A DNA stretch of 64,000 nucleotides from the NCBI RefSeq assembly GCF_963676685.1, contig NC_092348.1, positions 35,030,001 to 35,094,000 on the forward strand. The letters are read 5' to 3'. Origin of the DNA: Mytilus edulis. Its lineage: Eukaryota. Position 1 is the first letter of the stretch, and each line of letters starts with the position of its first letter. Position numbers and translations under genes: made by a program. The notes below the pieces were generated by a model. It ran no database searches. It was not told the DNA's origin and saw nothing but the letters and a program-made list of their open reading frames with translations. Below, piece by piece: positions 26,977-59,326 of this stretch.

Positions 26977-27296
26977 GTAAATACATATACCATGACATAC
27001 TTTCAGTTTAATAATGACACATCTGAAAGCGCTGTCATTTGACACGTTGTATACAGACATGACAGATCAGTTAATACTTGTTATGATTCATAAGCTATAT
27101 CCAAGAACTGTCTAGGTAAATACTGTATGTGACTAAAGAATCCCATCCGTAAAAGCACCAAAGAAATATATGTGCACTACTAACAAAAAGACTATATTTA
27201 CTGGTAAATACTACTCAAACTAGTTCCACTGTTTCAAAAGGTTGAAAAAGAAAAATCTAAATATAACAAAATAGAAATAAATTTCATTGGTACTAA

Positions 27297-27561
27297 CACT
27301 AGTAGCACGATTTCAGTCTGAAACGGTCATTTTGGTCTGATCGCATCTTGATTGACTGGATTTACCGCTAGAGAAATTCGTCAAGATATTTAAGGTCGTT
27401 CAGTCGTCGTTCAGATCGATAGCCTCACCAGGTAAATCAGTTCGTTAAGGCATGTCAAGACGGAAAAGACTGAATCGTCTAGCGGCTTGTTTAGATCCGT
27501 TAAGAGCGTGTCAGACCAAAACAGACCATGGATACAAAATTACGTTCAAAATTTTCAGACC
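27297..27561 (+). repeat. Left terminal inverted repeat of the CACTA element
   Basis: The first 189 bp match the reverse complement of 59027-59215 with one mismatch; a further ~75 bp is more diverged. Confidence 0.95.
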
Positions 27562-30500
27562 CTGTTTAGATCGTTCAGTATACCGGTTTGATACCACGAG
27601 TTGCGCCCCTTCTACTCGATAATGAATTTTAGATTAATATGTATATATGTATTTTAATATTAGAATTTGAAGTATATTTTGCCGGATTATTTAATAAAAA
27701 AGATTAAATCTTCTGTTGATTCTTTATTTCTTTTCTTGTTCTGTTGAGGAACAAATAAATTATTCGTCTATACATGTTGTTTATTTTTTAATATAAAATG
27801 TTAGTTTATATAAATATATATTGAAAATAAATTAAATGCAAGGGCGTATGTTAATTGTATACACTCCAATATGTATGCCATAAATTTAACCTTAAAATGT
27901 TGTGAACACCGGTGAAATAGTTTTTCGTATTTGAATATTAGTAACGGAAAATCCTTAACGTAACCTAAAAAAAGTTACTTCAGGAGATGTGGTATGATTG
28001 CCAATGAGACAATCCACAGAAATGCAGCGGAGGCAAATTAACACATGCATATTTTTGTTTTATGTATATGACAGTTGCTTTAATTCGTTGTCTGTTGATT
28101 AATCCTAGTTTACCGTATGTTTTGTTTTTTTTTCGTGCGAGTTACTCTATTAAACTTGGAAAAAAATATTCCCGACATCCGGAAATTCGAAAAAGACTTT
28201 CCGGATTCCGAAAGCTGATCATAATACTGCAGTCAGTCTCTGTCGGGACGGTGTTAAAGTATCACCGTATACAAATTTTCATTCGAACAATGTTTCCTTC
28301 TAATATTTATTTTCTAATCTATATAATATATATACAGTACTTAGTATAAATATAAATATATATATATATATATGGCGTTAATTTAAAAAACAAAATCTGT
28401 TTTGGTTAAAATGGTCGAGTTCAATGGCACGTGCTAGTAATCAACCGGGTCAACAGGTAACAAAATCATTGATCCATAACGTAAGAAAGTACATACCTAT
28501 TTTATTACTCTCATCATCATTCTTAATAAAAAGGTGCCGTAGGGCTAAACGTTAATAAAGAATTAATTAATGTGTGTATACACGTATTAGTGATGTCTGA
28601 CCGTCAGTTTTTAATATACATGCTTGTTTTTTTTTATTGAGGAAAATAACGAATTTGAATCTATTATACGTTAAAGGTTCTTACAATATCATATATGTCT
28701 AAACACTATAGTACCCAAAGACCATGCAAAATATTTGAGCGCCGCATGGAAACCCATTAAAACATGTGCTGTTTCGAAAGGTTGTTTAGTATTCACAGGA
28801 AACTTTTCGCTTCTCTACTTATATAGTTTAGAGAGTGTGTCAGTTATATAAAGTAGTGTGTATTTGTATTCTATTTATTTGGCTAATTGTATCATTATAA
28901 TATACATTTTGTATTTCACAACTATAGTATACTATAAGTTGTAGTGTGATTGATTGTTGTTTAAAGTCCAGTGGCAAATGCTTCATGCATGTTCAGGACC
29001 AGCTGTAAGTTTATGACATATATGGTCTCACCGGTGTGGTTTTCACGTGTTATGATAGATAAAAAGAATAATTAAGTTTTGAAATATCGAAACATAAATA
29101 AAGGAGGCAAGCTAAAAAGCGCATGGATAACCCGCACTTATCAGTTCTTTTCTCTTTTTGTCTAAAAAAATAATGTTTTTTTGTTCGATTTTTTTTTTAT
29201 ATGTTTATATAATTTACGATAACTGTGGTGTGTACGTGCTGTCAGACGAAAGATAAATATGTGCCTTCTAAAATTCTTCTTTAATGGATTGTTTGCTTTC
29301 GCATTGACGTTTAACACACAACTTTCATTACTTTCTGTGATGTATGTAGAAATTCAAACGTACTGGAGAATGAAGGATTCAAATCCAAGCTTTGAATTAA
29401 AATGGTAATTAAATAGCCCGGCACTCAAATAAAAGAACAAGTGTAAGTGTTGGAATGACCTATACAATATATATATCAACATGTGCATTGCCGGAGAATT
29501 AAAGTTTGATTTTACTTTAGTAACTAGACAAAATTGCAGAGAGGCAGCCCAATCTTTTCTCCTTTTTGTTACGAGTACAAATAAACCGATCTTAGTTATT
29601 TCGTACAGCATTTCCTTAAAGCTTTAAATAATAAAATCGCGCGTGATTATCTAACAAATACTCACAGTGCAGTGTACTGCTTTCGAGACAAATTACGTCA
29701 AATTATAGAGCAGTTTAATGGCTCCAACTCAAAATTTTAACCATTCTATGTTGGGGGTCGGGTCTACCATTTAGTTTGAAAGCCCTTTTTATTGTGATGA
29801 TTGGGAATTTGCATTAAGCCGTTGGTGACGTGCCGAGTGGCACACGCTGATTGAAAAGTCTTTTTACTTCACAATTACTATATCTATTGATACCATTAAT
29901 ATGAGTTATATACTAATATTCTCTTTTATCCTGGCATGTTCTTTGGGGCCTTAAAAGGTCGTTTTTTTTAGAGTCCTGAGTGCTTAAACTTTCTTCTTAG
30001 TGCACTAAGAAATCCTTTGCGGTATATACACAACGGACGCGTTGGTCTTAGTCACTACTTTACCTTAGATTTATCACCTTAATTTTCACATGTATAATAC
30101 TACTTTTTATTTGATGCATGACATATAAAGGAAGAAATTTGAAAGATTACAGCCTGCATTATACACTAGTATGTCATCGAATCATTTCAGACACTCATAC
30201 ACAAAATATTCTCACTGTCGTTTGCTAAATATGGACTATGATATATAGAAGCGACGTATTCGTAAAGACAGATTAAGAAGATGTGCATTGTGGTATGAGA
30301 GCCAAAGAGTCAAAAATAGTATTTAGTTGTACAATAATTGTCTGATTGGCAATAACATAGTTCCATGTTTTTAAATTCAAAGGCTCCTGGAGTAAAACAA
30401 TCCCTGACTAGTCTCTCGAGCCCTGACTATACCGAACGTTGACTTATTATACGAACTAACCACTATCACACAGTTTTTACAAGCATGGCCCGTGTTATTA

Positions 30501-31439
30501 CTTATAATGTCATACAGCCAGTTTTGTATTATCTACAATTATGTATCATATATTCGTTAATTTTTTTTTTTTATCTATTTAGTTATTAAAAATAAATCAA
30601 CCTCACAACACACGTGTCAAGAAATATAAAAGGTGAATCTGGTTACAGTAAATCTAACTATTATATATATGTTCCTGCTTGGGTAATTTATACAGTTATA
30701 CATATATAGATTTGGTGCCACAGATTTAATGGTTATACAAAATGCATTCATGTACACGTAATAAACGAATTTGGTAATTGTCATTGTTTGTCGGGAATAC
30801 ACGTACTTGTCATAATTATCCCTATATTAATTTTGAATGTTTTTCCCCGAGGGCTAATCATAACCTACGCCATACGGCATGGATAAATTACTAGAATAGT
30901 TTGAAAGGTTTTAAGCTATTATTTCGTACCAAACTGCATTTGACACAAAATCGGTTATATTGTATTCATTCTTTACACAAAAAAATAGAAATAGTCTTAG
31001 AGAACGAAGTCGACCTATGCACAAATAACACTAATTTTCAAAGAAAATTTTGTCATGATCAAGTGTTTATTTTATCTTGAATTAAATCAAAATACCCAAA
31101 AAAGTTTTTATGTCGTAGGGTTACGTATTTTGTCACGTATTTGACAATTACATTTGAAATTTTACTGGAAAATCGCCGTTTTTAGCGTCGTAAGAATATA
31201 TATGCATCAACTGATGCAGACATTATTTCTCGCTGCATTGAAGACCTGTTGGTGACCTTCTGCTGTTGTCTTCTCTATGGTCGGGTTGTTGTCTCTTTGA
31301 CACATTCTCCATAAATGATTTCCATTCTCAATTTTATTATAATGACTTTTGTGTGTATGAATGATATTCTTAAAAATTGTTATATATTTCAATGATTTCT
31401 AACGAAATGTTAACATAACGTTTGCCTTGAATTTTTATA

Positions 31440-32110
31440 ATCAAATACTTTTATTGTCATATAAATAAATAAAAAACTGATCTCTGACAAACATAACATA
31501 TATACAAAAATATACAGTACAATATTAAAATACAAAATGTAGCAGTTGAAATTATTGTTTTGGGTCTCCCGTCCTCAGTTCTAAAGACTCATATTAAGGA
31601 AACTGTATTTTTAATTTGACTGCGAGATGTGGCGTTTAGTAATATCCTAAGTTTAAGTGTATCATCTTTTGCAGTGTTTTTTCCACTCCGAATTGATTTT
31701 CGTTGAGTCAAAAAAAAAATGTTATAAAAATTATATTTAGAGCATTTGAGACAGAAGTGTTTTTCGTCCTCAATCTCATTACAGAATTTGCATATCTCTG
31801 ATATCTAGGAATGTTTGACCTTTTCTATTAAAAGAGTGAGTTCGCTAATAATAAATTTTGTTCATAGTTTTCTGGAGTCAGAATGGTTATGTTTTAGGTA
31901 AAATTCTTGTTTCAAGTTAATCTTAATATTTTTGTATAGGAGAATTTTATTACTTTCATTTAAGTCCTTAATTTATCTTTTTTTCTAATATATTATTGAA
32001 AAAGACATTGCAATTAGATTTAATTTGCTTTATAGACATCGAATAGAATTCAGGTCATAACATTACGGAATATGATCTTCAAAATATATAATTTTATACC
32101 AAAAACATGT
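31440..32110 (-). pseudogene. Decayed LINE ORF2 3' fragment (C-terminal CCHC motif)
   Basis: The reverse strand reads ISELTLLIEK...CKFCNEIEDEKHFCLKCSKYN with frameshifts. Confidence 0.6.
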
Positions 32111-32848
32111 AACAAATACATTGTTTTTATATATATATATATTAAAGTAATTTTTCGGTCATCAGTGAAAGCAGTAGCGTTTATTTGATTTTAAAACACG
32201 AATCGATCTATACTATTCAAAATTACAATACACAAGCTGAAACCGTACCAAGTAATTATTATTTTTGCACACGACATCTAGGCTGTCGTCCCTCCTCTAA
32301 CAGTAGACAGTTTTCTTGGTGGGGATATTGTGCATTCAACCGTGGATATGATAAAATATCTGTAATAAACAAAATTGTAATGTTTTGTTCGTGTAATGTC
32401 CTAATTTTAAGGTTACGCGGGTTTGGTATAAAGCGGGACAATTGGTATGAACACATTTCGATATACGTGTAAAATATATTAAAAGAGCTTTCAAACGCAA
32501 AGATATTTTCGAGGATATTCAAATATACAAATAAAGATCCTTTTTATGTTTTTAAATAAGCCTTTTAATTTAATAAATACATTTAAAGTACATGTAATTA
32601 TTTATGCTAGCTAGCCCACCAATAAGGTCTCAAAACGAAGATTGCCAAACCAAATCTATTATACTATTTTGTTCGCCATTCGATTTTTCATCATTTAATT
32701 TATAAGTTCACTTGAATTGTTTAGGTTTTATGTGGTTTGCAATTGAAGGATGGAAGAGTTATCATTGATATGTTCATAATTATAAATTTAAAGTTAACAA
32801 TTTTTTTTTTATTTTTGAACAAGAGGCTTTTCTATCTTAGGAATAGAT

Positions 32849-32971
32849 CAGAGGCGGATTTAGAGGGCCCCCCCCCCCTTTTTGGGAAAAAATTTTGTTG
32901 CTTATATAGGGAATCACTGAAGCGTGACTGGAGCGGGCCCCCACTTATGAAAAATTCTTGATCCGCCACTG
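32849..32971. mobile_element. Short GC-rich MITE
   Basis: cagaggcggatt ... gatccgccactg inverted termini. Confidence 0.55.
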
Positions 32972-33959
32972 TAGATGACCTTACGGTGGATGTAATTGGG
33001 AATACGTATGTTTGTCCTCAATCCTCTTCAACTTCGAACTTTATTTTGCCTTTTTAAATTTTTTATTCGAGCGCACTAATGAGTCTTATTTTTTTTAGAC
33101 GAAACGCACGTCTTCCGTCAATATAAAATGTCAATCATGGTATATATGATGAGTTTATATACCATAGTGTCAATAGAGAGAACATTCTTCGATTAAAACA
33201 CACCCGGAAATAGCAAGAAAGTTTACAAAAAGAGTAGTGGGAACTTTGCTAAATTTTTTTTATCATACTATATTTCTGATAGTTTTCCCGAGCTATTCAC
33301 ATATTTTTAAACTTGAAAGGAGACCTCTTTCAGCGACACGAGCCTGGAACATGTACACATAACATGCAGTTGTAAGAAATATAGCTATATAAATATAAAA
33401 GAAAAGATGTGGTATGAATGCGAATTAGACCACTGTCTACAAGAGACCAAAATGACACAGATATTAACAACTACATGTCACCGTACGGCCGTCAACAATG
33501 AGCAAATCTCAAACCGCATAGTCAGCTATAAAATGCATTTCAAAGATACTAGAATAAGAATAAAAGGTTAACGTACTTACAAAATATGTCATCTTGTAGA
33601 ATGTGATTTCACAAAGATATGATTTTCAAATTCGCAGTCCAAGTCAATGCAAGGATTTGTAGAGTAAGACCTTGGTCAATGTAAAATCGGTTACACACAT
33701 TTTTCATGCTATAAATCCATTCCAACAATATCATTTTAAACACAAACTAGCTTGCCTTTTCATTAATTGAATAATACAAATTCAGCTAAATTTTGTTTAT
33801 TTCCATCAACAGAGATTTCTCACACTCATCCCAGACGTTAATAATACTCATGCACTTCAATTTTGATATGAAACAATTTATTGATACGGATGACTACGTT
33901 TTACAAGTACGGTTATGCATCAGGGTGTAAACAATGTGAATTTGTTTTTAATTGAGTTC

Positions 33960-34320
33960 AAAGATAGATTAAACGGTAGCTTTAATAGTGAAATGAACTA
34001 ATTTTTTTGAAATCTCGCCTAAATGTATGTTGCATAGATGTATTTGACAACAACAATTTATTTAGATCAAGCTGTTTTAAAATTATATTGATAAAACCAT
34101 TTATTGGTAAATACCGCATATATCTGCTCACTGTTTGAATATAGAAACTTGTCGATTTCATAATATTGAGAGATGTCCGAGATTTTGTAATATGTGTGAT
34201 AAACGAGTAATTGAAGATGATTATCATTTTATTTTAGTATGTGAAAAGTATAATGAACTTCGAAAGAAATTTATCAAACCATATTGTTGAAGAAAACCGT
34301 CGAATCTTAAACTGTTTAGA
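33960..34320 (+). pseudogene. Decayed LINE ORF2 3' fragment (C-terminal CCHC motif)
   Basis: KYRISAHCLNIETCRFHNIERCPRFCNMCDKRVIEDDYHFILVCEKYNELRKKF. A third smaller remnant (CHFCGSIDIGDEYHYIMTC) is at about 37045-37110. Confidence 0.7.
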
Positions 34321-36459
34321 CGATAATGTATTTGAATGGGGACATATAGTTGGAACTCGCCCCTTTTTTTGTGCTGGGATGGGACCCCCTTTTAAAGTGG
34401 CTGGGTGCTCACCAGTATCTGTTCATAATATAAAGCAACTTAACAATTCAAGGGAGGTTATTATTTCTGACTGAGAAGGCACGAAATTAAATTCATTTAA
34501 AAATGTGTTACATTTGATCATACTCTGCTGTACTGTTATATGCATGGGTATACTTACTTATATGATTATTTGACTAATTGTTTAAATGTAAATATATTTC
34601 ACTGATGTAACTGAATATTTGTAATAATTATTTTTTGTAAGTTGTATTGCTTAGGAATACAAGATTATATTATTAATAAAATAAATATTATGACTTTCCT
34701 TTTTTCATTGGATGAGCATGCAGTGGTGTTGAAACGCCAAAGAACTGGAAATAGAAAGCTATTTTAATTTGATACATAGGACAATGAATCTTAACAAAAG
34801 GTTCTATAAATTCAATTGTGAAAAAAAAATTCACAATACCGTGCATTAACTCAACAACCGTCCATCGACAAATATTACTTGATATTCATTGAAATGATAA
34901 CAAGTAAACAGTTATTGTAAAAACAGGGCAGCCTTAAATTCTAATAGTTTTTGTCAAAAAAGATTCAAAGTTTTACTGATGCAACGATATCTTATATATT
35001 TTGAGTTGAAATGGCCTAGCGGTAGTCGGATACGTCTAAACACCGCTCAGGACCTCCTGAGTGCACTCAGAACATACAAAGTGCACTCAGGACCCTTTAT
35101 AGTCGTCGCATTTGCACACAGGATGTATGTATATATTCCTTACATGCTGCTTATATAAGAATTAAATTTTGGTAGAATTTGAAATCGAACTTAGATAGAT
35201 ATGTTAACTTTTTTTTAAATAATGAGGGCACGTGTCACTGATTACACAACTACTGAGCCGTGAATTATCCAATCAACAAAATTAATTGGATTATCTTTAT
35301 TGATGTTTATGAATTGTGTTGTTTGTACAATGTTGCGTTTAAAATAGTTGAGATTGTTTAACATGTTTAATGTAGTTAAATTTAAATTATGCACTGTGAA
35401 AATAGTGAATTGTATGTTCATGGAAAAAAAATAAGATAACCCATTCGATGTTCTTTTTCAATTTACTTTTCATTTTGACGGCTAAATTTATATTTTGTAT
35501 TCTGCAGTTTATGAATAAAGAAAATAAAAAAAAATCTGTAACAAGTTCTATTTTTGTTTTTCTTTGTTATTTTTTCTTTCTCTCCATTTCAACATAATAA
35601 ACACAAACAATGTTTACTAAATATCAAATTTTATTCTCAATAAACAATACACATAGTTAAAGGGATGACATTTAAAATTGAGAATGGAAATGGGGAATGT
35701 GTCAAAGAGACAACAACCCGACCAAATAAAAAACAACAGCAGAGGGTCACCAACAGGTCTTCAATGTAGCGAGAAATTCCCGCACCCGGAGGCGTCCTTC
35801 AGCTGGCCCCTAAACAAATATATACTAGTCCAGTGATAATGTACATGTATGTACAATATTTACAATAATAATATTTACAATTTTAAAATAAGTCTAATAT
35901 CTTGGCTGTGTGCGTGCTGTCCTTGGTCTTTTCCTGTTGTTAGGCTTACGAGCAAGCTTCTGGGGTTATGGCACTTCAAAATCTGAGCATGAAGACTTAG
36001 TCGTGGTTTGGATGGATTTTGTGCCGATCAACAGTCTCCGAAATAGTCTTTCTCGCTGTTCTTGTGCTTTCGAAAACCAACATTGGTACGATACGACATG
36101 TCTTCTGTACGGACCGAAAAGTTCATAATTTCCCATTCCATACATGGAACGCTTCAAATCGATTAGTTGTACATGTGCAATGTCCATTAGTTTGGTTGCA
36201 AATTTATTTTCACATCGTAATTCGTTCAAGGATTGTATTACTGGACAAGAACGACTTTAATGAGAAATAAAATCTTACTAAATGCGGATTTGTTCAAACA
36301 TTCGTATTACTCGGGAATTAAATTACTGGACAAGTCCGATAAAAATGAGAAATAGAATCTAACTTTATGAGATTTTTTATTGTTTGAAAAATTTATTTTG
36401 GTCAGTACGCTTTCTATACTTAAAAACGGGCTCTATATACAAAACTAATTAACTTCATG

Positions 36460-36835
36460 AAAAGTAAATTTAATCTAACGCCAAACGATAGCCGGACCAG
36501 AGGTAAAAACCGCTTCTTCCAAGAAAGGGCCACAACAGACGCCTTCGGACAATCATTTTTTCCAAGGACCATTCGGACTGGAACCAACTGCCAACATCCG
36601 CAACATCATCTGACACAGTTGATGGATTCAGAGCTGCCCTGAAGGCATGCTCTGCTAAAATTTAGACAGTAACATCCTGTACATAGTTAAAATTGTATAT
36701 ATATAGAGAACGTTTTATCCTGTAAATAGCCAAGAGAAAACTTTCTGTGTTGTCCGACATTGCGTTAGTTTTCGCGGGATTCATACATTCAAGATTTGAA
36801 TTCGGTTCCTTACCTGGAAGAAGAAGAAGAAGATA
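36460..36835 (+). mobile_element. 5'-truncated CR1/L2-group LINE fragment
   Basis: TRG...SFFPRTIR, then a frameshift into WNQLP (typical CR1/L2 ORF2 C-terminus); 3' UTR and (GAA)n tail at about 36817-36833. Confidence 0.72.
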
Positions 36836-37621
36836 AAAAAAATTAAAAAAAAATCGAGATGTGGTATTATTGCCAAAGAGACAACTCCCCAAAAGCATGA
36901 AACGAGATTAACTTAACTGAAACAGAAATTAACAACTATAGTCACGTACGGCCTTCAACAATTTGCAAAATCCCTACTTTAAATTCTCTTTAATATTCAG
37001 TATAATTTCCTAAAGTTATTATAACCAACCCCTTTCAAGACAGACTTTGTCATTTCTGCGGCTCAATAGATATCGGTGACGAATATCATTATATCATGAC
37101 ATGTAAAGCGTTGGATGTAGCTATAGATAGACATTCTATACTATTCTGTACTATATTAATACACACTTAATCATGTTTTTAAAGTTAAAACTCTGAATTG
37201 AGACAGCACTATCGGTCATCTTATATACAAAAAATAATCTAAGTTCCTACAAATGTTACAGGTAAATCAGTCCTGCAAGCTACATGCAAGTTAAATCAAG
37301 TTTTTTTCAACCTAAGTGCATGGTATTAATAATTGTAAATATATATTTTCTTTGTTACTATGAAATGTAGTTTATTAAAAGTATTCTTTTTTAGAATGTC
37401 CGATTAATATGTGTACACAAACACAAGGTAATAGTTACAACAACACAAAGTATATTAATTAGGGTTGACATCTACTGACAGGTAAGTGTTCCATAGTTCC
37501 AGAGAATTTATGACAATACCCTGCACCCCTTGCCGTACACTCAGACAGAGGTATGGCCTCCCTGATGTAAGCCCCCCTCATATATAAACAATCATTTTCA
37601 AACGTGATTATTTCATAAATC

Positions 37622-40600
37622 ATGGATACTAGCTTCAGCCAACCCGGTTCTCAACCTGCTCATTATAATCGCGCTATATGTACTATTGGATGTTTATGTT
37701 GTGCCAAACTTATCGCCCACAATGAGCCATGCAGCTGTTGGAAACCAGTCGCCACAGCAACAATCTCAACACAAACAGATCCAGGCATTAGCTACGGATA
37801 CAGTTCCGACAGTTACTTCACCAGGGGCAATGTTGCCCATTCATTGCTTCATGTGAGTACACCACATAAAATATAAATGTATATAAGTTTAAGGTGGTAC
37901 ACACCACTTTCACTAAAATTAATTTGGCTCGTTTAATTTTCACAAAGTTTTGAAGTATTTACTTCGACCTTTTGACAAAAATATAAAAAAAATTGAACCA
38001 ACCATTTTATCAGAAAAATTACACTGGTTATATAGCAGTTTGACAGACAGTAATTTTGATCATTCAGAAGCTGAATTTCCCCTTAACAAAACAACGTAAT
38101 TAAAACGTTTAGCTGATTTTACAGAGCTATCTCCCTGTAGTGTTAGGTACCACATTAATAGGAAATATCTGAAATTACTGGTATTTAGAGGAATGTGGAA
38201 TGCATGCCAATGAGACAACTCTCATTCATTGTTTTACATCCTGTTTTACCATGTGAGATTTGTGTTGAATTGCGTGCATATTAAATATGTGTATTTGTTC
38301 CATATTTGATTGTGAATCTCGTATTGACTTATTAGTTGTTTGCTTTACTTACAGTGGAAATGTGTTCATGCATATTCATGATGCATCATGGTAATGAATC
38401 TTGTGAAAAAAATTAAAGATGTTGCCTTATTTGTATGAGTTAACTTGTTGAAGATGGTTATTTGAAAGTCCTCCTTGTGTTTAAATTTCATTGATTTCTA
38501 TTTACTTATACTAAAGTTATTGTGCGAAAACCAAGAATAATGCTTAATTAGGCCCTTTTGGACCCTAATTTCTTAACTGTTGGGACCAAAACTTCCAAAA
38601 TCAATCTGAACCTTCCTTTTGTGGTCATAAACCTTGTGTTCAAATTTCAAAGATACTTATTTACTTATACTAAAGTTATAGTGCGAAAAGCAAATGTCTT
38701 CAGACGACGAAGCCAACGTGATACCAATAATTGACAAATTTTTTTTCAATTTTTGCGGTTGTATAAAAATACAAAGAATTTGAAGCAACCGTTTTTTCAA
38801 AAAAATACACTGGTTATATATATATAGCAGTTTGACAAACACTAATTTTTCCCTTAACAACACAACATAACTCAAATTTTACAGAGTTATCTCCCTGTTG
38901 GGTTAGGTACCACCTTAACTGTTTTCTTTCATATAAAAACATATGTTAGGCTTGTTCTGTCATTTTTATACATGTCCAGAGTATATTTATTCATGTGGTT
39001 TTGAAAAAAAAACAAACAATTTAACGCTCAATAAGTGTGCAGGTATGCTTAAGAGTGACTGAAAACATTATTGACCTGTAACTGATGCCAATATAACTTC
39101 TTACTTGTTTAAAAACGTTTCAGCTATATGGAAGAAGGACATATTTGTGTACAAGAATATTTTTATTCATACTATATGAACACAATGTAACAAATTACAC
39201 ATCTGAAAGTCAGTCAATACAGCAAGATCAAATATATAAGCTATCACATGTAAAACTACCCTTGCAAATTAAGAAATAATAATTATCAATGATCATATGA
39301 TACACTTTTATAAACTTTCAATAACAAAAAACATGTTCTTCCTTACAAATAAGTTAAACTTCAAAATTTATTGTGTCAAAAATGTGAACTAGTAACCTAT
39401 CTATAAATTTTTATCATCTTTATTTCAATTCAGAAAAAAACTAACTTTATATAAAATTATAAGTGTGTGATTTTGTGGATAAGTATAAAATACATGAGCT
39501 AGTTTGAAAACGTTTTTTAATACACACTGTTACAACAGTATTCACTTAAAATACAAGTAAGTACAAGTCAGCCTGATAAGCCAACTTTTATACTTATATA
39601 TCCTTTAAATTTGTTTGGCTTGGCATTAATTTCAATCTTAAGAGATCACTTGAATTTATTTATAATTATGTACAGGTTCAAAGGATGTGTGACTCTCAAG
39701 ATAAAATAGATTTATTTAGGTATATTATATTGTATGTACAGTTTGTACTGACAAATAGTTAAAATTCTTTAATACAAAGAATTAAAAAAAAATCTATGTA
39801 CACAAAATCTGTATAGAAACAGTCAAACTCTCTGACCAAGCATGTATCATTTGTACATGTAAGAAAGAATACACACGGTCTAAATTATTTTGAAGATAAA
39901 TACTCGAAAACCCTATCTTTCTAAATAGCTTTAATAGTTTAAGATTTAATTATTTAATTAACCTTACATTCCAATATATAATAAATAAAGAACTACTCAT
40001 ATATAAACATATCATGAATACTGTCAGGACTGTATATTATGAAATTATTTTATTTTTGCTAAAAGTCATTCCAATAATTAAAACTCCCATTTTGAAATTT
40101 TTCTTTAAATCAATAGGAAATTTCTGAATATACCATTTTATTCTTAAATGATAAAATATCAGTAATAAATGCACGCAATAATTTCTGAATATACAGTATT
40201 CAGACAGTTATATATGTGTAAATATGAACAGAATATTCTGTTTCATGTAAAAATATTGACTTTGCAGTCTGAAATAAAGATTCTTATGGTATCTTATAAG
40301 AAAAGGAGCTTTTATTTAACATTCATACACATTGGTATCAAAAAAGTTAAATTTAAACAGCAGTTTTGGAGAAATTTAAAACATTGTCTATATACATATA
40401 CTTTGTCAAATAAGAAAACTGATCAATTACAAGTTAGATACATGTACGGACATAATGAAGTCTATCATTTTCTCTCCCAACAATCTGTGGAGCACTGACA
40501 TCTTTCAACATAACAGCTTTCTGTGAGGTTTTATGCTCTAACACACTCCAGAATCCATCTTCATATCTTACATCATCAAATATATCAAGCAAAACCCAGG

Positions 40601-43600: not shown

Positions 43601-46600
43601 TTTTAACACTTGATCTATCAAGTCTCCATGGAGCTGGGGGTAGTTCATTTTCTGCTGTCATTGATTCTACTCTTGCTTTTTTAGCTTTTCTCCCGTCTTC
43701 TGTATTTGATTTTCTTTTGTTGCTTCCTACAACTGTTTCCTCGTCATTGATGATGGTTCTGCTGTTCCATGAATCCTTAAATCGTTGAAACTCTTCTTCT
43801 CCACTCCGTACCTTTTTCCCATCATCTTTTCCTGTTATGAGGCCAAAGAGATTGCCAATTACATCTGCAATGGTGTGCATACCGTCAGGTTGCATTTGTT
43901 CTTGACGATTATGGTAAGGCAGTCTCATGAAGCTATATTTTCCTTTCAGTCCTGTTTTTTTCTGTAAAAGAGATTTTCTGTTTTGATTTGGAAGTTGATC
44001 ATAGCTGTTTCTGATTTCTAATTCTTCTTCTTTTGTATAAGACTCTGGTTTACTTGCTCTGTCCTCACCTTTGATAGCAAAATCATTCTTTTCTTTTCTC
44101 AATGGATGATTTTCTGGTAAAAAAGCTCTATTGTTGATATGAACCACTTTGTGTAAAGACTTACAATAGAATCCTTCTTCCTTACAATAAGGACATCCAC
44201 GGAGTGCAGCCTGGCTTGAAACATGTAAAATCTTGCTGAATGCGGGAATGTCACACATGTAATGCAGGAGTGCTATTCGGACTGATGTAGGGGCTCCTCT
44301 GTAGGCATTAAACATTGTGCACTCTGTCAGTTCTAGCAATTCATCTACTAAAAGGTCCAAATATGGATCGAGGTTTTTTGTCTCTTCTGTCTTTGTACCT
44401 GGAACAATGCCAACCAACATCATTGGTCCTAAAATATTTCGGACATTTACAGGCAAATTGAGCCAGGTGAGGATTAATGGCCACATCGACTTCTGAGTTG
44501 CCATACTTTTGTGAGGATTAAGCCCATCACAAAAAAGTGCCAATGGAACTGTACAGCTTTCCTCCATGTCCTGAAAGACTCCTCCATCTTCATACCAAGA
44601 TTTATATATCTTTCCATCAGTTATGTCAGTTAACTTTCCATTGCAAAGATCTTGTCTGGAATAAAGAATCTTACATATATTGTCACTTCCAAAAATCCTT
44701 GAAAGTCTTGGTCCAATAGGCATATACGTAAAAGTTTTTCGTGCACTTAAGGACTCTGCTTTGTATCTTGGCTCTCCACATTTTGTACATTCTCTGTCTA
44801 ATGAGTGGTCATTGTCACTTGTTTTGCAGAAAAGTAAGCAGTCATTGACACATGCATCATATCTTTTTGTTTCTATAATCATCGGTTTTATCATTTGATA
44901 TGCTTCCTTATAAGATTCAGGGAGGCAGTTGGGAGTTGGTAATACTGTCTTCTCATTTTTTAGGCACATGCTCAGTGCTGTTTTAGACATTCCATTGTTA
45001 GCGCTGAAATTTATGAAGTGTCTAAACAAGGAGTCAAGTAGTGTTGTACGACAACCTGGATATAGTGGTTCTTGAAGTTTTTCGCTAAGTGAATCATCAT
45101 TATTCTCTATCGGTAAAAAGTTTGGCTTCAGATATGAAGATTCCTTGATTGAATTACTGATGGTTTTAAAATAATTCTGTTGTTGTCTTCTTTGAGTCCT
45201 TTTACTTTTCCCAAGTTCTGAAAGAAAAGACAGATTTTAGTGAATTTGGAATTGTGTGATTGATATTAACTCAGATCATTATAACGAAAAATTAATATAT
45301 AAACATTTAGCATTCTGATTTCTGTGAGTATTGCAAATCACTACATGTACCTCAGGGATCTCCATGGCCTGTTTAATGATAGCGCCCCGCCAACATTCAA
45401 ATGTCTTGCGCAATCGTCAAATGACTTGTGCCATCGTTCAATTGTCTTCTGCCATGGTTCAAAACTGGAAAGTTTTAATAGCCTGACACCATTTTATTAG
45501 CAATTTTAATCAAATGCATGTTATTGCATAACCCTCAGGCTGTTTTTATAGTATAATCCATTAGGGATAACCAGATTAAGATCGCTAATCACTTGTACCT
45601 GAGCTTGCACAGATAGATCAACAAAACAGACAGGAGAATATTATCTGAAGATAAACGATTTATTTGTCGAATTATCTAACTAAGTTTCCGCAAATGCTTA
45701 TGAAAATTCAGAGATCAAATAAATAAATTGATAATCCAGTTACAAAGTTTTAACAAGATGAACACATGCTTTTATTTTGACTTGCGCAATCAGCATCCCC
45801 CTTTTTTAAGAAGTACAAAATAAGGCGTAGAACAGTAATTGTTATTTCATCAGAAATAACTTGAGTACTGCTGTATTGTAACAATAATATATAGATATAG
45901 GAAGATGTGGTGTGAGTGCCAATGAGACAACTCTCCATCCAAATGACAATTTAAAAAGTAAACCATTATAGATTAAAGTACGGCCTTCAACACGGAGCCT
46001 TGGCTCACACCGAACAACAAGCTATAAAGGGCCCCAAAATTACTAGTGTAAAACCATTCAAACAGGAAAACCAACGGTCTAATCTATATAAACAAAACGA
46101 GAAACGAGAAACACGTATATATTACATAAACAAACGACAACTACTGTACATCAGATTCCTGACTTAGGACAGGTGCAAACATTTCGTATTTTATAATCAA
46201 ATTGATACATCCGCACTACTGCAAACCAGCCATACTGGTAATGGGTTCATGACTACTGAATTTGACAGTGTCCGTGAAAAATAAGCTCCACATAATTTTT
46301 AACCCCCATAACGATTACCAAAAAATAGCAAGAAAAATGCATTGGGACCTTCGTGACAGCTATTGGTTATTCTCGACTTAGGGAAAGGTAGGGGCATGAG
46401 GGCTTGGCCTTTGAAGGGTTAATAAAAACGGCAATCATTGAAAATATATACTTCTATATAGTATTTATAATGAAAATTCAAATAAATATAATTCAAATAA
46501 AATAAATTAGCATGTTCACCCATACTTATGTGGAGGGATGAAATACATTACATCGTGCTACACTGTACGGCGTATGATACAGTTTATGATGATGAAAGTT

Positions 46601-50774: not shown

Positions 50775-51332
50775 ATTATATTTCTGTTATCATGGTTATC
50801 ACATGTTATTTATTATAAAATAATATATATATCAAAAATTGAAAACCTATCAAACTGTCCCTGTTTACTTGGTATGAGCAACTTTGAGAATGTTTAAGAA
50901 TTTTTTTAATTGAAATATATAACTCAAATTGTTTGTGTAACCAGAACAGTTTTTTTTTATAAACCTTGTACTTTGTTCATAACGATTTTTTATTGACATA
51001 TCTTATCATCATCAAGTCATCCCTAAATTAGCTAAAAAAAAAAAAACAAATGAAAGAATATTACTTTAAAACCCAAAAGACTGATATCATCAAAACCTAA
51101 CTGTATGAAATTGTATGAACATTAAAGATAAATTATAGGCCTAGTTTAATGATTACAGCACCTAAAATTGTGGCATTATATTTCTCATGTTTCTACATTG
51201 TAAATGTCTAAAATAGAATGCCCAAAACTTTCATGTATTGATCTTTTGTAAATTCAACAAAACACGATACATGCATGTATGATTAAATGAGTGAGGAAGG
51301 ATAAATTAGGATATACATATTTTTATATTTTT

Positions 51333-51368
<36 letters not shown>

Positions 51369-52104
51369 TTTTTTCATTCATGTATGATCATCAATATACA
51401 TGTATATTCCACATTGTATTTATTAAAAGAAATGCCAAAGGCAAATATAACATCATCAAGTCTTTCTTTAAATATTTTTTATCTACCAGCTCAGCCATAG
51501 AAATAGAGGTTTGGCATTCACAGCACCGAATTAATACTTCACATTTTGCTTACTTACGAATGAACATATGTACTACAAACTTAACAGAAATTGACAGAAC
51601 CAAATGTACATGTATATCTACACATGTTACAGAACAAGGACTGTATGTGGTTTTCTAATTTCAAGATCAGTAGTTAATAATATTATAAAACATAAAATTT
51701 GGTATGAAACTTCTCAACAAAGACTGAAATGGTGTTGAAGTTATTAGGTATAGGCCACCATACAGGTTTCAACAATGAGCAAAAAACCATACAGAATACA
51801 TTGTAGTAATACTGTTCCTAATGGTTAGGTAGACTTTGTTTTACCAAGTACACAAGAGACCAAGTGCAGCATCGGTATTGAGAATCTGGTTTATAAAACA
51901 ACCAATATTGAATAATAGAAATAATGCCAGAAATATCTATACTATTTAACCAGATGTGTGTCAATTCTCTTCTTTCCACAATAAATTAATCATCATGCCT
52001 CTGTGTCCTATAGGTACAGTGCATAATTGTATTTGTCATCCATTCATATAATTATTCAGATTTAGTTTTTTGGGGAGAAAAACGAGAAAAAGGCGTCCTG
52101 ATAT

Positions 52105-52472
52105 GTCAGATTAGACTTCCAGTATGTGTTTTTCTGTATACTATAAACATACATATACTACGAATGAAGTGTATTTGCTGTCTGATATTCGTCGTTAGAT
52201 AATTTAAGGTCAGATTAGACTTCCAGTATGTGTTTTCCTGTATACTATAAACATACATGTACTACGAATGAAGTGTATTTGCTGTCTGATATTCGTCGTT
52301 AGATAATTTTAAGTCAGATTAGACTTCCAGTATGTGTTTTTCTGTATACTATAAACATACATATACTACGAATGAAGTGTATTTGCTGTCTGATATTCGT
52401 CGTTAGATGAAATTCTAAGTCAGATTAGACTTCCAGTTAGCGGTTTTCTGTATACTTTTGAACATACATATG
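52105..52472. repeat. 104-bp tandem repeat, about 3.5 copies
   Basis: gtcagattagacttccag units start at 52105, 52209, 52313 and 52419. Confidence 0.93.
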
Positions 52473-54442
52473 AAAGTTATTCATGTATTATTAAAATCAA
52501 TAGCAAACAAAAAAAACTTATTTTTTTGTGAAAAAAGCATGAGCCGGGCTATAAAAACAATAATCCTGTCCCAAATCACCTATGATTTGTTGTTCTGAAA
52601 TTCTTCAGTTATCAAATTTTTTTACAAAAAAAAAGATGTGGTATGAGTGACAATGAGACAACTCTCCACAAGAGACCAAAATGACACAGAAATCAACAAT
52701 GAGTAAAGCCGATACGGCATAGTCAGATATAAAAGGCCCTAAAATGACAATGTAAAACAATTCAAAGGAGAAAGCTAACGGCCTTATTTATGTACAAAAA
52801 ATGAACGAAAAACAAATATGAAACACTTAAACAAACAACAACCACAAAATCCTTCCTATGACACTTTACATACTTTCAAACACGCTTTGAATGCCTGCAA
52901 TTTCGCGGGTTTGTTCTAGTTAATTAATAGATGTAAACTCAAGTCGCTAGACACTGACTGAGGGGTGGATGCAATTAATACTTGCATTGTCATTGAATTG
53001 TGCGATAGCATTAAATAATATACAACATTTCCCACAACTGCACTCACTATTATCAGGATACATGTAAAAAAATGTACATGTATATATCAATGTTTTTTTT
53101 TAACAATCAATAAATAGTTACACAAATGTAGTTTCATCACAAGTAATTACTGGATATCATTTGATATATCATGGTATTTAATTTCAATATAATAATGACA
53201 CTATCAATACTCATGATACTGTGATACAGGAAATATCTCTTCATGCAAGATTAAACAACCTCACATACCCCACATCCACACATTGTCTTTATAGGAGAAA
53301 TTAAATAATGGTAAGAAAAATATAAAAAAAAATCCTGTCTTTATGCACATCTACGTAGTATGTCCTTATTATCTTCAAAAAGCTTCATTAAATTCTGTTA
53401 CAGTGTAGTTTCAGAGGAGTTGCTATGACAAGAAACAGGACTGACGGATGGATGGGTCAAAAACATTATACTCTCTGTGTCTTCTTTCCATGGGGTATAA
53501 AAATGATAACAGGCCAGCCCCAGGACCATAAAAAAATACAGTTGTACGAATTAACATTTTTAATTATTTGTATATTGTACTTACCACATATATCAAAATA
53601 ACCAGAAAAATCCATATTCATCTAAGGTAATGTAACCATCACTTTGTACACGTACAATGTATTAACCTAAATGAGACAAAAGTTAGGAATTAATTTTACA
53701 TATATTTAGACAAATTTCTTTTTATGTTGTTATTCAACATAATGTTATGATCTACAAATATCCCCCCTAACCCCCTATCATATTACAAGAGTTTATGTGA
53801 GTTAATTTAACATACAAAAAATAGATATTTAACCCCTCTTTTGTGGTTATAAACATTGTGTTAAAATTTTTTGATTTCTTTTTACTTATATAAATACAAA
53901 AGTTATAATTCGAAAACAATCCGTCTTCGGACGATGTGATATACAACCATATTTTTTTTTTTGCGGACGTATAAAAAAGAATGAAGTCAGTGGGATTAAG
54001 AAAAGCATGAAATGTCCATAGACTCGAACTGGTCTTACCTTTTTAGCTTGCCAATATTTCATTATGTTTTAAATCATTGTCTTATTGGTCAATGTTTACA
54101 AACTCCTGATGTACAAAATTCCAATTAGGATGTGTATTCGAAAGTTGACTTTGCGCATGTGTGTACATGGTGAAAATAGAAGAAAACTTACAGAGGCTTG
54201 AAATGGGGAAAATGGTCCTGATTTTATGTTTGGTGATGAAATAAAGTTTATTTGAGACTTGATTTACTGATGTTAACTTATTCTATAATTCAAAGGAGTA
54301 CATGTAACACTTCTTTGTGATGAAAATACAAGACTCTTATGGTAACCTTATAAGAGATGGTGAAATTGCATCACTCTTTATCTTAGCTGTAACTAAAGCT
54401 AGGAACGTGGCCATAGTTTGATAAAATACAATATTGTCTTAA

Positions 54443-54737
54443 GGGAGCTACCATTTGATTTTTATGGGGGGGGGGGGGGGGGGCTAGGATGAAAAATTTT
54501 GTCCTGCATTTTTTTTTAGTTGTAATCTCTGTCCTGCCTTTTTATTTTTCACTCTATTCGGTCCTGCCTTTTTTTTTATTATAGTTTATCCTGACTTTTT
54601 TTTACCTAAATTGTCATCCTGCCTTTTTTTTTGCAAAGTGTCTCATCCTGCCTTTTTTTTTACGCAAAACTCCTGTCCTGCCTATTTCTTTCAAATTTCA
54701 TCCTAGCCCCCTCCATAAAAATCAAATGGTAGCTCCC
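54443..54737. mobile_element. PIF/Harbinger-type MITE
   Basis: TIR GGGAGCTACCATTTGATTTTTATGG, 3-bp TAA TSD, internal tcctgcctttt tandem units. Confidence 0.8.
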
Positions 54738-57050
54738 TAAATGACTGCCATGCATAAATAGATTTCCAGAAGATTTTTGCTAATTGACTAGAAGTAAATC
54801 TTAGTCATATGTCATGTACATGTATGTCAGATTCTAAAATAAATAAAATACAATGTCTAATTAATGGCTCATGCTAGCAGGCGACATCAGTGTTCAAGTC
54901 GCTTTCCAATCAATTCCTTTTGCCTAACCATCAAAAGTGAAATCTAGTCATGCTGTTGTCACCTGACCATTCTCTATTTAGTTGCTTTCATGGATCATTC
55001 TTAACAAGTCAATGAAACATAATTTATTTTTATGATAATTAAAAGATTTGGACTTAAATTGTATACTCCAACTTGAATTGAACAATATAAAAAGAACATT
55101 ATTTACATATATAAACTCATCATACCGGTAGACACTTAATACTATAGTACTAGAGCACTTCTCTCTCAAATCTCCACTTCTCCCTATCTGTTTCAACTAG
55201 AGTCACTTGCAATGTATCCCTATGATTCTGAAGCATGTGAGCCCTGTCTCCATGCCAGCTATTAAATTTTATCAGTGTGTTTAAATTTTATAGTTAAAAG
55301 ATATCTAGTATGATTTACAATATGACAATGCCATCACAGACCAAAGGACATTGAATATAAATCAGGTAAATGTAAAGGTGAACAGCATACAACCATAAAC
55401 GAGCAAACTTTTGTTCATCTTTCTATAGTTACTCACAGTGTTCTCCCAAGGGCCTTTTAACTTCATGGTAATGTGATTTTACAATTTTTAATGTGATGCT
55501 ATCTGAAGTGGTTTTCTTATAAATTATGCTATGGATGTGTTGCTATACATTTTAATAACTAGATGGTTTTTCAATTTCCCCTTATTACCACGAAACAACT
55601 ACATGCACTATACATACAAAAATATGTAAATTGCTCTGACTATGGTCATTGCAATTCATTTCCTTAATGACCACTCTACACCTACATGTACATTTGTATC
55701 TCCAGTACAGTCCGGTTTTATCAGACTCTAAATAAATCTTAATTTAAGGTCTTACAATGACAATGTTTGTCTCTCATGTTCCATAACTAAATGGCCAGCT
55801 ATTTTTAATATATTAATTACGTGGTACGTGTACATGTACACAAATGTATATGTATGATTACTATTGATACAAGTCTCCACTAGATCAAATATTGTAGCAG
55901 TTAGCAAATATAGGTGAACATGGTAAACAGCCTTCAATAATGAGCATTTATACACCTTTTTTTCTTGGTTGAAATTTCAGGTATAAATTGCTGTTGTATA
56001 TTAGTGAAATCCTTCATATAACAACAAAATTATTGGCCTAAATTATGTACAAAAAAATAACAAACAAATATACACATGATACATGGCACAGACACCATAC
56101 AGAAATTGAGAATGTGGCGGGGTTAAACATCTAAGCCGGATCCTAACCATTCCTCTAACCATAGGTCAATGTAATACATAGAAACCACTTAAAATTTAAA
56201 TCTGAGAAAATCTTGCTACTAAATTATCAATGCATGTACAAATATATATCAACAATATTTTCTCAACTGAGTGATGGTGCTAATCTGTAACATTTTAATT
56301 TGCATAAGGACAGTACTGGTTTATATGAAGCTGGGTGTGATTTAGATGTTAGTTACAAAAATGTAACTTGTTATAATTATTATTACTGATATCTATACAT
56401 GTAAATCAACTATCAGTCATGTCAGTGTCACCAAATGAATATTACATGTACAAAAAAGCTGAGATGAATAAAATAGTTTAAAATTGAACACAATTGAGTA
56501 ATAGCTAAGTATTTAAGACTCTGCTATTAAATTCCCAATTTTTCCTTTCTTAAATTAAAGAAAATAATGATTTTCATATACATGTATGACGATATTTTAC
56601 AGCTTTCTGAAAGGGATTTTTTTATTTAGGCAAGCACTTTCTACTGCTTTTTATGCTTCTTATAATGTAATATAAAGGGTAGAAAAAAGTTAATAATCAA
56701 ACTTCAGAACTAGAAACCCCTTGACCACCAAACTGTGAAAAGTCAACCTCCACCAATGAAACTTCAGGAAAAATTGAAAGTCTGTGTTAATGCATGTACT
56801 TTTAAGAATACATTTTTCATGTTTTTCAAAATACATTAAGTTTTAAGTAGAAGTACAGATTAGTTATTTTTCAAATAATTTATTCATATTCATTGCCTTG
56901 TCACGCATATGTTCTGAATTACACTTGCACCTTAAGAAAGTTTCTTATTCAAATATTGTAAAAAATTATCAATGACAGTGGACAATACTTCCTTTCATTC
57001 TTTTAATGTCAACAAGGCTCCCAGTTGAATGCCATAATTTGACCTTCTTA

Positions 57051-57504
57051 GGCCCGAGAACACAGTTATTTTGTAGTGCATTTCTTTTAGACAATAAATT
57101 CAAATTAAAAAAATCTGCACCTGCTCTTTCTCAAAATGATTTTACAGTGTAGTGTACTACCAAGTGAGACAAATAATATCAAAATTATACAAACTTCTAC
57201 CAGCTCTAACTCAAAATATTGACAAATCTGTGTTAAGGGGATGTAAAATTCAGTTTGACAGCTTCAGACGTGCTAAAATTTGACCTTTTAGAACTGGACT
57301 AATTTACTTCTTAACATAAAGATTCAGCACCCAATTTTTTTTAACATGTAATTACATCCCCCTACTTAATATTGCATGCATTTAATATCAAGAAATAAAT
57401 TGGGAAAGTGTATCAAATAAAACATGCAAGTTATACACTGTTTACACTAGGGACTATATTCGTAGACAACGAAAACCAAAGGACGATAACTGTGTCCTTG
57501 GACC
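57051..57504. mobile_element. MITE-like element
   Basis: ggcccgagaacacagttat ... ataactgtgtccttggacc imperfect TIRs. Confidence 0.55.
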
Positions 57505-58949
57505 ACATGTATAATGGTTTACTTTTATAAATTGTTATTTGGACGGATAGTTGTCTCATTGGCAAACACACCACATCTTCCTATATATCTATGTATAACA
57601 GTGTGTAGAAAAATATTCAATACACTACTTTGTGAATTCTGTCAGTGAATATTTCATCAGGGGGGGGGGGGGGGGGGGCAATAGGGGTCTGTTAACAGGT
57701 TAACAACACCTAGATTTTGGCAAAAACAGGTCACAAAAAATGCTGATAACATTTAACGAACAACTTGATCTGAAATAACAGTTACCAGCACCTTGAAAAG
57801 GGCCATAACAGGTGAACACAAAAAGGTATATTTCCCCCACCCCATCCCCACCCCCTCATTCCATATATTTTTTTTAAAATAGAAAGTTCAGAAATATACT
57901 TTTGTGTGAATACAAGGGATTTTCAAGTCAGACTGAGGTGGTGATGTTTCAAACATTTATTAGCACGGAATTCACTGCCAAGTTATCAATTTTAATTTGT
58001 TATGATGGAGTGCGGAAACTGAGAGCCTCTAGGCTCTTACTCTGCAAATTGCAATATATCTATACATTTTTACATTTATAAATGATATTATAAGGCCGGT
58101 GGCAATATAAGATAGTTTTCTATTAGAAAAATCTACTTACGGGTGTCTACTATTTCCGATGTAATTTACAGGTTGTAGTTTGTTCGGCTTCAGCATCTAA
58201 AATGGCGCCAACGATAGCGTGCCTCAATCGATACTCCTCTGGGGTCACCTTAAACTACGTAGAGTATTGCAAGAGTCTTCCGAATAATTTGTGCACTGCG
58301 AGATTGATTGGCAACTTTCGTTATTTAATAGATTTTTCCTGCCTCAAATTTACCCAAAATGAAATTTATATGGAAAACATAAAGAAAATAAGTGATAATG
58401 TTTTTTTTTCATTTCCAATATTAAAAAAAAATACATCAAAATTTAATTAAACATGATTACACGTTTTCAAGTCACTATGATCATCCCGACATCCCGTATT
58501 TTTTTAAGAACATCTGTAATTCTTTAATTTATAACTGATAAGTCAAGTTGACAAATTTTTCACCACGGCACCAGTCAGTAATTGCACAAATGTATTTGCA
58601 ATCACTTATAAAGTTTCAGATGCTTTAATATTCAATAAATAAATAATACTTCGGCAATCTGTTGATTTTTAACTCAAGTCGCAGCGGTTTGTGCAGCAGT
58701 TTGACTTTGAGCTACTTATTTTTTTTAATATCAAAAATATTAATTAATTAAATAGGAAGAAGCAAGAATTAAAGTTGATTATTTTTTCTATTTAATTAAG
58801 GGGACGTCATGGTACACTTTCAGTTAACATAAACCGTCTTCTTTCTAATTTTTATTTTATTCTTAAAAGGGGAGCAACCCCTGATAATCACTGTGAAAGT
58901 TTCACCCGTTTTTTATCCAAATTTTAAAAATCTGAACATGCCTTGACAT

Positions 58950-59215
58950 GGTCTGACAACATCTTAACGTAATTTTCTATCCGTAGTCTGTTTTGGTCTG
59001 ACACAGTCGTAACGGATCTTAACAGCCCGCTAGACGATTCAGTCTTTTCCGTCTTGACATGCCTTAACGAACTGATTTACCTGATGAGGCTATCGATCTG
59101 AACGACGACTGAACGACCTTAAATATCTTGACGAATTTCTCTAGCGGTAAATCCAGTCAATCAAGATGCGATCAGACCAAAATGACCGTTTCAGACTGAA
59201 ATCGTGCTACTAGTG
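58950..59215 (-). repeat. Right terminal inverted repeat of the CACTA element
   Basis: Reverse complement of 27297-27561; ends TAGTG followed by the TAA TSD. Confidence 0.95.
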
Positions 59216-59326
59216 TAATTTTAATGGATTGAGAAAAAAGAGTATTTTCATTGATATTTCAATTAGTGGTTTTGCCAGATTCTTTTCACAAATAGTATAG
59301 AAAATGATTTGTTCGTTGAACATTAA

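Follow-up and report, generated by a model that had tools for sequence, protein, structure and literature searches.

We analysed a 64,000-nucleotide stretch of the Mytilus edulis genome (contig NC_092348.1 of assembly GCF_963676685.1, positions 35,030,001 to 35,094,000), hereafter called the window, whose numbering is used throughout. Positions 27297-59215 very probably make up one autonomous 31,919-bp transposon of the CACTA/EnSpm (CMC) superfamily, a DDE cut-and-paste element that transposes as a single unit and leaves 3-bp target site duplications (TSDs). It is a new, giant and recently mobile member of the superfamily, and it is unusually large for a DNA transposon in an animal. RefSeq already lists the products of both its genes as uncharacterised proteins. 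An initial annotation of the window had described a genuine and apparently intact CACTA/EnSpm element, and its termini, TSD, transposase and sibling copies all bear this out. The same annotation took the remainder of the element for ordinary genome, perhaps carried as cargo, and here our results differ.

The terminal sequence CACTAGTAGCACG is read at 27297 on the (+) strand and at 59215 on the (-) strand. The ends are exact CACTA...TAGTG termini, and a copy of the TAA TSD abuts each of them (27294..27296 and 59216..59218), as previously described. The left terminal inverted repeat (TIR; 27297..27546, + strand) begins with CACTAGTAGCACG, and the right TIR (58966..59215, - strand) ends in ...CTAGTG. 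An inverted-repeat finder returned arms of 251 nt (27296-27546 and 58966-59216) that are 96% complementary. A base-by-base comparison of the arms agrees with the 189-bp TIRs of the initial annotation. Their sole mismatch falls at position 132, and beyond the first 189 nt scattered differences continue to about 250 nt. The TIRs enclose an internal region of 31.4 kb, and the element contains no runs of N. No internal copies of the TIR were found inside the element by the inverted-repeat finder or by BLAST against the sibling copies. The flank to the left of the element ends ...GGTACTAA and the right flank opens with TTTTAATGG...; a direct join of the two would represent an empty allele or an excision.

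The termini also carry short repeated motifs. The degenerate heptamer CGTTMAG has 12 sites in the window, nine of which lie within about 300 nt of the ends of the element. Five are subterminal on the left, reaching 27578 just past the TIR, and four are on the right; all nine point inward. These clusters look like the subterminal repeats of CACTA elements. A search for exact 9-mer subterminal repeats found none. A 21-bp tandem repeat (3.6 copies, 45389..45463), located in intron 1 of the transposase gene beside exon 2, has a unit that contains CGTTCAA, which is similar to the subterminal motif.

That the element is one mobile unit is seen most directly in its other copies. A search of the M. 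edulis genome with the 250-nt end yields at least 423 candidate matches. The best 40 candidates per query were scored in this and the other genome searches, and for the 250-nt end these are 94-100% identical. Five pairs of TIRs in inverted orientation were retrieved, and the window element (on C5; 31.9 kb, TSD TAA) was compared with them by BLAST. The copy at C14:68,010,982-68,046,070 (35.1 kb, TSD TAT) is collinear with it from first to last base at 96.6-99% identity. The copy at C4:87,149,578-87,191,189 (41.6 kb, TSD TTT) is collinear apart from one extra insertion of 12 kb. A third copy, at C7:63,566,396-63,583,517 (17.1 kb, TSD TTA), has an internal deletion and lacks the sequence corresponding to 34431-49756 of the window. 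The other two are deletion derivatives, one at C14:61.70 Mb (14.6 kb, 81-93% identical, TSD TTA) and one at C9:59.06 Mb (5.9 kb, 84-92% identical, TSD AGA). All six copies share the terminal sequence, have their own perfect 3-bp TSD and sit between unrelated flanks. Homology between copies halts exactly at the termini. The CACTA...TAGTG termini are exact in five of the six; in the remaining one, an old copy, one end reads TACTA.

With a TIR family this abundant, chance pairs are conceivable. Two small elements could bracket 31 kb of unrelated sequence, or the length could have built up through nesting after insertion, and later insertions do set the copies apart (12 kb in the C4 copy, 2.4 and 1.0 kb in the C14 copy). 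We consider such an origin extremely improbable. The window element and the C14 copy have about 31.5 kb in common, and about 29 kb is common to the window element and the C4 copy, in each case collinear from TIR to TIR and stopping at the termini; the window element has no TIR copies in its interior. Because the copies combine the same termini with TSDs of their own and unrelated flanks, a chance pair of small elements and a segmental duplication are both excluded. The extent of the common sequence also indicates that the unit was already about 30 kb long when these jumps took place. Thus, the whole 31.9 kb moves as a single unit. The initial annotation had proposed a giant element mobile as a whole, and suggested a search with the TIRs and interior for further full-length copies with different TSDs; the C14 (TAT) and C4 (TTT) copies are what that search yields.

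The copies also date the activity of the family. Substitution divergence from the window element is 0.6% for the C14 copy, 0.7% for the C7 copy and 1.2% for the C4 copy, and reaches 7.5% in the old derivatives. A divergence of about 1% is close to the level of allelic variation in mussels. The family, with copies about 1% apart, transposed very recently, in line with the recent mobility proposed before, and it has spawned hundreds of older non-autonomous derivatives.

The first of the two genes encodes the transposase and lies on the (-) strand. It comprises five exons that join in phase at GT-AG borders and together give 2709 nt or 903 codons. Exon 1 (53621-53585) comprises 12 codons and one nucleotide and has the donor GTAAGT. 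Exon 2 (45217-43491, 1727 nt) is entered in phase 1 and holds the Transposase_21 domain with D243, D335, a CxxC pair and D457-x-x-H460. Exon 3 (42821-42624) has 66 codons; it and the two exons after it were placed from relatives, with splice sites read directly. Exon 4 (41964-41803, 54 codons) carries part of DUF4218 and a PFER motif with E683. Exon 5 (41021-40437, 195 codons; stop 40436-40434) is identical to the corresponding part of the M. edulis RefSeq protein XP_071173751.1 (P0206, 903 aa). This protein matches all five exons at 100%, save for alignment spill-over at the borders. Its residues 1-12 correspond to 53621-53586 at 100%, with the exon running one base further to 53585. The coding sequence amounts to 8.5% of the 31,919 bp, and the earlier estimate of less than 10% therefore holds.

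The first exon lies 8.4 kb upstream of the second. The conserved 5′ part of the large exon has no ATG and its acceptor is in phase 1, so an upstream exon is required. A nearby first exon with an ATG at 45365 was ruled out by incompatible phases, and a short-peptide scan with the N-terminus of the M. coruscus protein gave no match for a first exon. The 12-aa exon 1 is also present in the M. galloprovincialis and M. californianus models. Since there is an AG acceptor just upstream of it, an additional exon in the 5′ untranslated region is possible.

A 532-aa open reading frame (ORF) at 43431-45029 matches Pfam Transposase_21 with an E-value of 2.9e-28. Exon 4 alone, which holds half of the DUF4218 domain, matches it with an E-value of 1e-4, under the gathering score; full-length relatives pass. 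In an alignment of 12 sequences with relatives from mussel, oyster and scallop, D335, E683 and D457/H460 are invariant and D243 is nearly invariant. The motif contexts are CDG for D243, CDIP for D335 and PFER for E683. We take D243, D335 and E683 to be the DDE triad from general knowledge of CMC transposases rather than from a solved structure. The uninterrupted spliced transposase with three catalytic residues of the initial annotation is thus present, with 903 codons and the three residues conserved. The close protein matches are all from Mytilus.

The genome holds other members of this transposase lineage. At least two further families of CACTA transposases are 50-54% identical to the one described here and have several copies with open main exons of 577 or 650 aa (C7:29.618 Mb, C10:58.267 Mb, C14:34.940 Mb, C9:39.479 Mb, C7:71.227 Mb, C13:51.869 Mb, and others). 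One arm of C11 (~26-44 Mb) has a cluster of dozens of short fragments of the transposase family, riddled with stops, and looks like a transposon graveyard.

The second gene, which we call ORF2, lies on the (+) strand and has two alternative first exons. The distal one (37722-37852) starts at an ATG at 37722, has the donor GTGAGT in phase 2, and gives isoforms of 221 and 202 aa (P0168/P0169, 100%). The proximal one (47002-47099) has its ATG at 47002 and the donor GTACGT, also in phase 2, and gives an isoform of 210 aa (P0211, 100%). Exon 2 (49086-49142, 57 nt) is skipped in the 202-aa isoform. Exon 3 is the last (50297-50771, stop to 50774). Exons 2 and 3 were placed by mapping of RefSeq proteins. 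The three isoforms, of 221, 210 and 202 aa, are RefSeq models whose alignment to the window gives 99-100% identity; the splice sites are canonical, and the phases agree. At 100%, the window element encodes XP_071173754.1 (P0211), the 210-aa protein of M. edulis. The RefSeq matches of a 143-aa ORF at 50343-50774 are proteins of 221 and 202 aa from M. galloprovincialis (99%) and one of 175 aa from M. californianus. An 84-aa ORF at 37622 was considered as the second gene and set aside; its frame differs from that of the supported first exon at 37722. The N-terminal third of the ORF2 protein is strongly basic. The remainder is acidic and contains 8-aa tandem repeats, encoded by the 24-nt repeats at 50562-50720 in exon 3. 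Pfam found no domain in it, and a search of the ESM Atlas found no look-alikes.

Exon 3 of ORF2 has genome copies in five young copies of the element, all of them open, and three degenerate copies on C8, and nowhere else. This restriction to copies of the family indicates that ORF2 belongs to the element and is not a host gene. The initial annotation was therefore correct in seeing a candidate second gene, which is real and supported by RefSeq models, and was mistaken in counting it as part of the ordinary genome. The RefSeq loci labelled 'uncharacterized protein' or 'nibrin-like' are now identified as the transposase and ORF2 of this element. The name 'nibrin-like', given to ORF2 in some M. 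edulis RefSeq entries, looks unfounded; FHA, BRCT and other domains were not found in the protein. One M. edulis gene model named 'DNA2' (P0171) fuses an AAA_12 helicase domain to exons 2-3 of ORF2. It probably reflects an insertion of the element within or next to a helicase gene, or else an erroneous merger of two genes in the model.

The two genes are interleaved. The proximal form of ORF2 lies wholly within the 8.4-kb intron 1 of the transposase gene, and exons 2-5 of the transposase lie within the 11.2-kb intron 1 of the distal form of ORF2. The layout is unusual in that two genes on opposite strands each sit in the first intron of the other. The gene pair is also found outside M. edulis. 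The M. californianus transposase, LOC127717236, shares the C-terminal exons at 93% identity and begins with the same 12-aa exon, but has an internal deletion. For the ORF2 protein of LOC127717238, 155 of 174 ungapped positions agree. Both loci are neighbours on a single M. californianus contig. Since the same genes adjoin there, the two-gene layout predates the split between M. edulis and M. californianus, or was transferred between the species.

Few copies are intact. Judged exon by exon, all five transposase exons are open in the C14 copy, exon 2 is frameshifted in the C4 copy, and the C7 copy retains exon 1 alone. A copy on C11 (96%) is interrupted by a stop, and a further one, on the unplaced contig C2357, is partial. 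The transposase is unbroken in two of about seven young copies, those on C5 and C14, and the assembly has no second near-identical copy of the left flank, i.e., no haplotig with the empty site. Both observations would fit a fossil, in which the family no longer moves and the two intact copies are merely young, or in which the intact genes have been recruited by the host. We regard this as possible but unlikely. Against it are the divergence of only 0.6-1.2% between copies and the intactness of both genes, with all splice sites, in the window element and the C14 copy. The TIRs and TSDs are perfect, apart from the few TIR differences given above. Multiple copies lie on different chromosomes, in M. 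galloprovincialis too, which is the opposite of a domesticated single-copy gene.

The recently mobile transposon that we propose thus has two genes, and more than 85% of its length is outside the coding sequence of transposase and ORF2. Could this be captured host sequence, shuttled as genes or fragments in the manner of Pack-type elements? The base composition of the element equals that of the surrounding genome, ORF2 has no domain related to transposable elements and could in principle be a captured gene, and the P0171 model joins ORF2 exons to a helicase domain. Even so, a cargo carrier is improbable in our judgement. Exon 3 of ORF2 has no copy outside the element family, and ORF2 accompanies the transposase in M. 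californianus. Six arm segments, searched against the M. edulis genome, match copies of the family and a few short high-copy repeats, with no single-copy parent locus at lower identity. No host parent locus for the arm segments or for ORF2 exon 3 was present among the best 40 matches per segment. Ten ORFs in the arms have no credible Pfam match, and nothing in Rfam reached threshold. The ORF, Pfam and Rfam searches found no extra genes beyond the transposase and ORF2.

The arms themselves behave as parts of the family. By genome search and Pfam searches of their ORFs, the left arm (27547..37721) and the right arm (53622..58965) are apparently non-coding, and the latter is specific to young copies save for its last ~0.7-0.9 kb. 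Hundreds of non-autonomous derivatives, 6-15 kb long, carry the segment 27547-35031, part of the left 7.7 kb of the element, at 82-91% identity. The search gave thousands of first-look candidates for it, and derivatives with 7.5% divergence already contain the left arm. The segments 36834-40430 and 45240-58300 are found only in a handful of young copies, with older fragments on C8 and C2 at 78-87% identity. Because the ten arm ORFs lack credible Pfam matches, nothing reaches an Rfam threshold and the segments are, among the best 40 matches scored for each, family-specific, the reading of the arms as cargo is rejected, and with it the view of the remainder as ordinary genome. We infer that the ~19 kb of arms are non-coding sequence of the element itself rather than host cargo.

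Some of the interior is made of nested repeats, which were identified by the genome search. A 360-bp repeat (36473-36833) has many copies that are 95-98% identical, which marks a very young high-copy family. It resembles a short interspersed nuclear element (SINE) or a miniature inverted-repeat transposable element (MITE), and is missing from the C4 copy along with 2 kb around it. An older interspersed repeat of ~840 bp (47434-48270) is 85-91% identical to many copies. The repeat at 49930-50215 is high-copy and forms tandem arrays elsewhere in the genome. A 104-bp tandem repeat (52105-52471, 3.5 copies) varies in number between copies of the element. A high-copy repeat of 460 bp is nested at 57046-57508. 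Dozens of 97%-identical copies of the latter occur at C8:43.84-43.91 Mb with a spacing of 1.7-7 kb, which suggests a large tandem or satellite-like array. Short MITE- or SINE-like pieces, identified by comparison with 78 kb of unrelated local sequence, add a further ~1.5 kb. Recognisable nested repeats total about 4 kb, a lower bound given that the best 40 matches per segment were scored.

Several points weigh against the interpretation of an autonomous CACTA element whose length is its own. The true share of nested repeats may exceed the ~4 kb just given. The CGTTMAG motif was chosen by eye and then counted, i.e., post hoc. The TIRs of plant CACTA elements measure 10-28 bp (PMC7139988), and those described here measure 189-250 nt. 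The short TIR is a description of the plant members and no condition for membership in the superfamily. No homology of ORF2 to plant ORF2/TnpA, or to anything outside Mytilus, was detectable, and an accessory role for its protein would be assigned by analogy only. Lastly, the RefSeq models imply transcripts of both genes rather than show them.

The likely mode of action of the element can be outlined from its sequence and from its plant relatives. The transposase would bind the CACTA termini and the inward-pointing subterminal CGTTMAG motifs. The ORF2 protein, partly basic and partly acidic, may fill the accessory role that ORF2/TnpA has in plants. The two transcription units overlap in antisense over 37.7-45.2 kb and 47.0-53.6 kb of the window, which may dampen expression of the transposase. 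It is a tentative further proposal, for which we claim little confidence, that the family remains active in mussels today and that no plain two-gene DDE cut-and-paste transposon known to move in an animal is larger. If so, the transposase together with ORF2 would naturally mobilise 30-42 kb between 250-nt ends, and the interleaved antisense gene pair would be a built-in self-regulating switch. The long conserved arms would then have a function in cis, which would explain why the non-autonomous derivatives stay at 6-15 kb. Independently of present activity, this CACTA element, with two genes and a length of 32-42 kb, has jumped whole at least twice within about 1% divergence. This suggests that its transposase tolerates very long substrates in the animal germ line. 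The observation bears on the transfer of genes as large cargo and on the reshaping of mussel genomes, which are known for presence/absence variation.

The element resides within one intron of a host gene that encodes a VPS9-domain protein. Two exons of this gene are the last to be seen before the element (25806..26976, + strand) and lie outside it, one ending at 26282 and one at 26787-26976, the latter with an AG acceptor and a GT donor. The element begins 320 bp into the intron that follows. The M. edulis protein P0223 covers both exons and then runs on into the GADDLLP part of the VPS9 domain. The exon for that part, the next one of P0223, was not found anywhere in the 64-kb window, consistent with the single host intron described earlier. 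A PDB search with the host exon gave no match.

To the right of the element, positions 59217-59324 belong to a 108-bp repeat family with many copies at ~75% identity. Copies elsewhere start exactly at the insertion point of the CACTA element, and the left flank contains no continuation of the repeat at those other loci. Repeats from the flanks of both sides did not co-occur at other loci. A piggyBac-type transposase gene (59327-63711) begins ~110 bp past the right end of the element in the same host intron. Its last ORF (62572-63711) matches Pfam DDE_Tnp_1_7 with an E-value of 3e-45, and the first 500 bp of 59327-63711 recur at 79-85% on C12, C7 and C2. Long acidic, repeat-rich ORFs with a KVTDKVKVPEED-type unit are present at 3022-3678 (-) and 1759-2530. 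Pfam has no match for these ORFs, which bear no relation to the element.

We found no description of this element in the literature on CACTA or EnSpm in mussels. Its closest parallels are the CACTA elements of plants (En/Spm, Caspar, Tam1, Tgm), with which it shares the CACTA...TAGTG termini, the 3-bp TSD, short subterminal repeats, Transposase_21 with DUF4218, and the presence of a second gene beside that of the transposase. As in plants, the transposase has four downstream exons, and an intron border falls near the catalytic E (PMC4158355). Spm, too, has a very long first intron, extending over much of its length (PMC1636069). The mussel element differs from these elements in its animal host, its size of 32-42 kb and its TIRs of 189-250 nt. 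In the mussel, ORF2 runs opposite to the transposase gene and interleaves with it, whereas plant ORF2 is produced from the same transcript by alternative splicing, and plant TnpA/ORF2 have no sequence kinship with the mussel ORF2. Enlarged En/Spm elements of the red alga Chondrus crispus, as cited in PMC6431247, are 16-20 kb long and have 4-5 ORFs, and are treated there as notably enlarged. They likewise represent a CACTA lineage far over its usual size. The algal elements grew by the addition of ORFs, whereas the mussel element has two genes, is ~1.5-2 times longer, and owes its extra length to non-coding arms and long introns.

Among animals, CACTA-related elements have been described in Schistosoma (SmTRC1), Tribolium and Aedes. 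They have CCC ends and 2-bp TSDs and measure up to 9.2 kb (PMC1636069). Similarities with the mussel element include the Transposase_21 transposase, multiple spliced products and the terminus in Tribolium, CCCTAGTAGCACC, which is nearly the same as the mussel CACTAGTAGCACG (PMC1636069). In contrast, the mussel element has true CACTA ends, 3-bp TSDs and a length of 32 kb. Other animal elements bounded by TIRs, integrated by a DDE enzyme and longer than 30 kb are Teratorn, a fusion of piggyBac and a herpesvirus (41-182 kb), and the Mavericks/Polintons (15-40 kb; PMC6431247). Those are virus-like and encode many genes, whereas the mussel element is a plain two-gene transposon without viral or replication genes. 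Giant transposons have been defined by an internal region of more than 20 kb together with excess coding capacity (PMC6431247). The mussel element has an internal region of 31.4 kb (siblings 35 and 42 kb) and no extra genes, and host fragments with a parent locus, the hallmark of Pack-type elements, are absent among the best 40 matches per segment.

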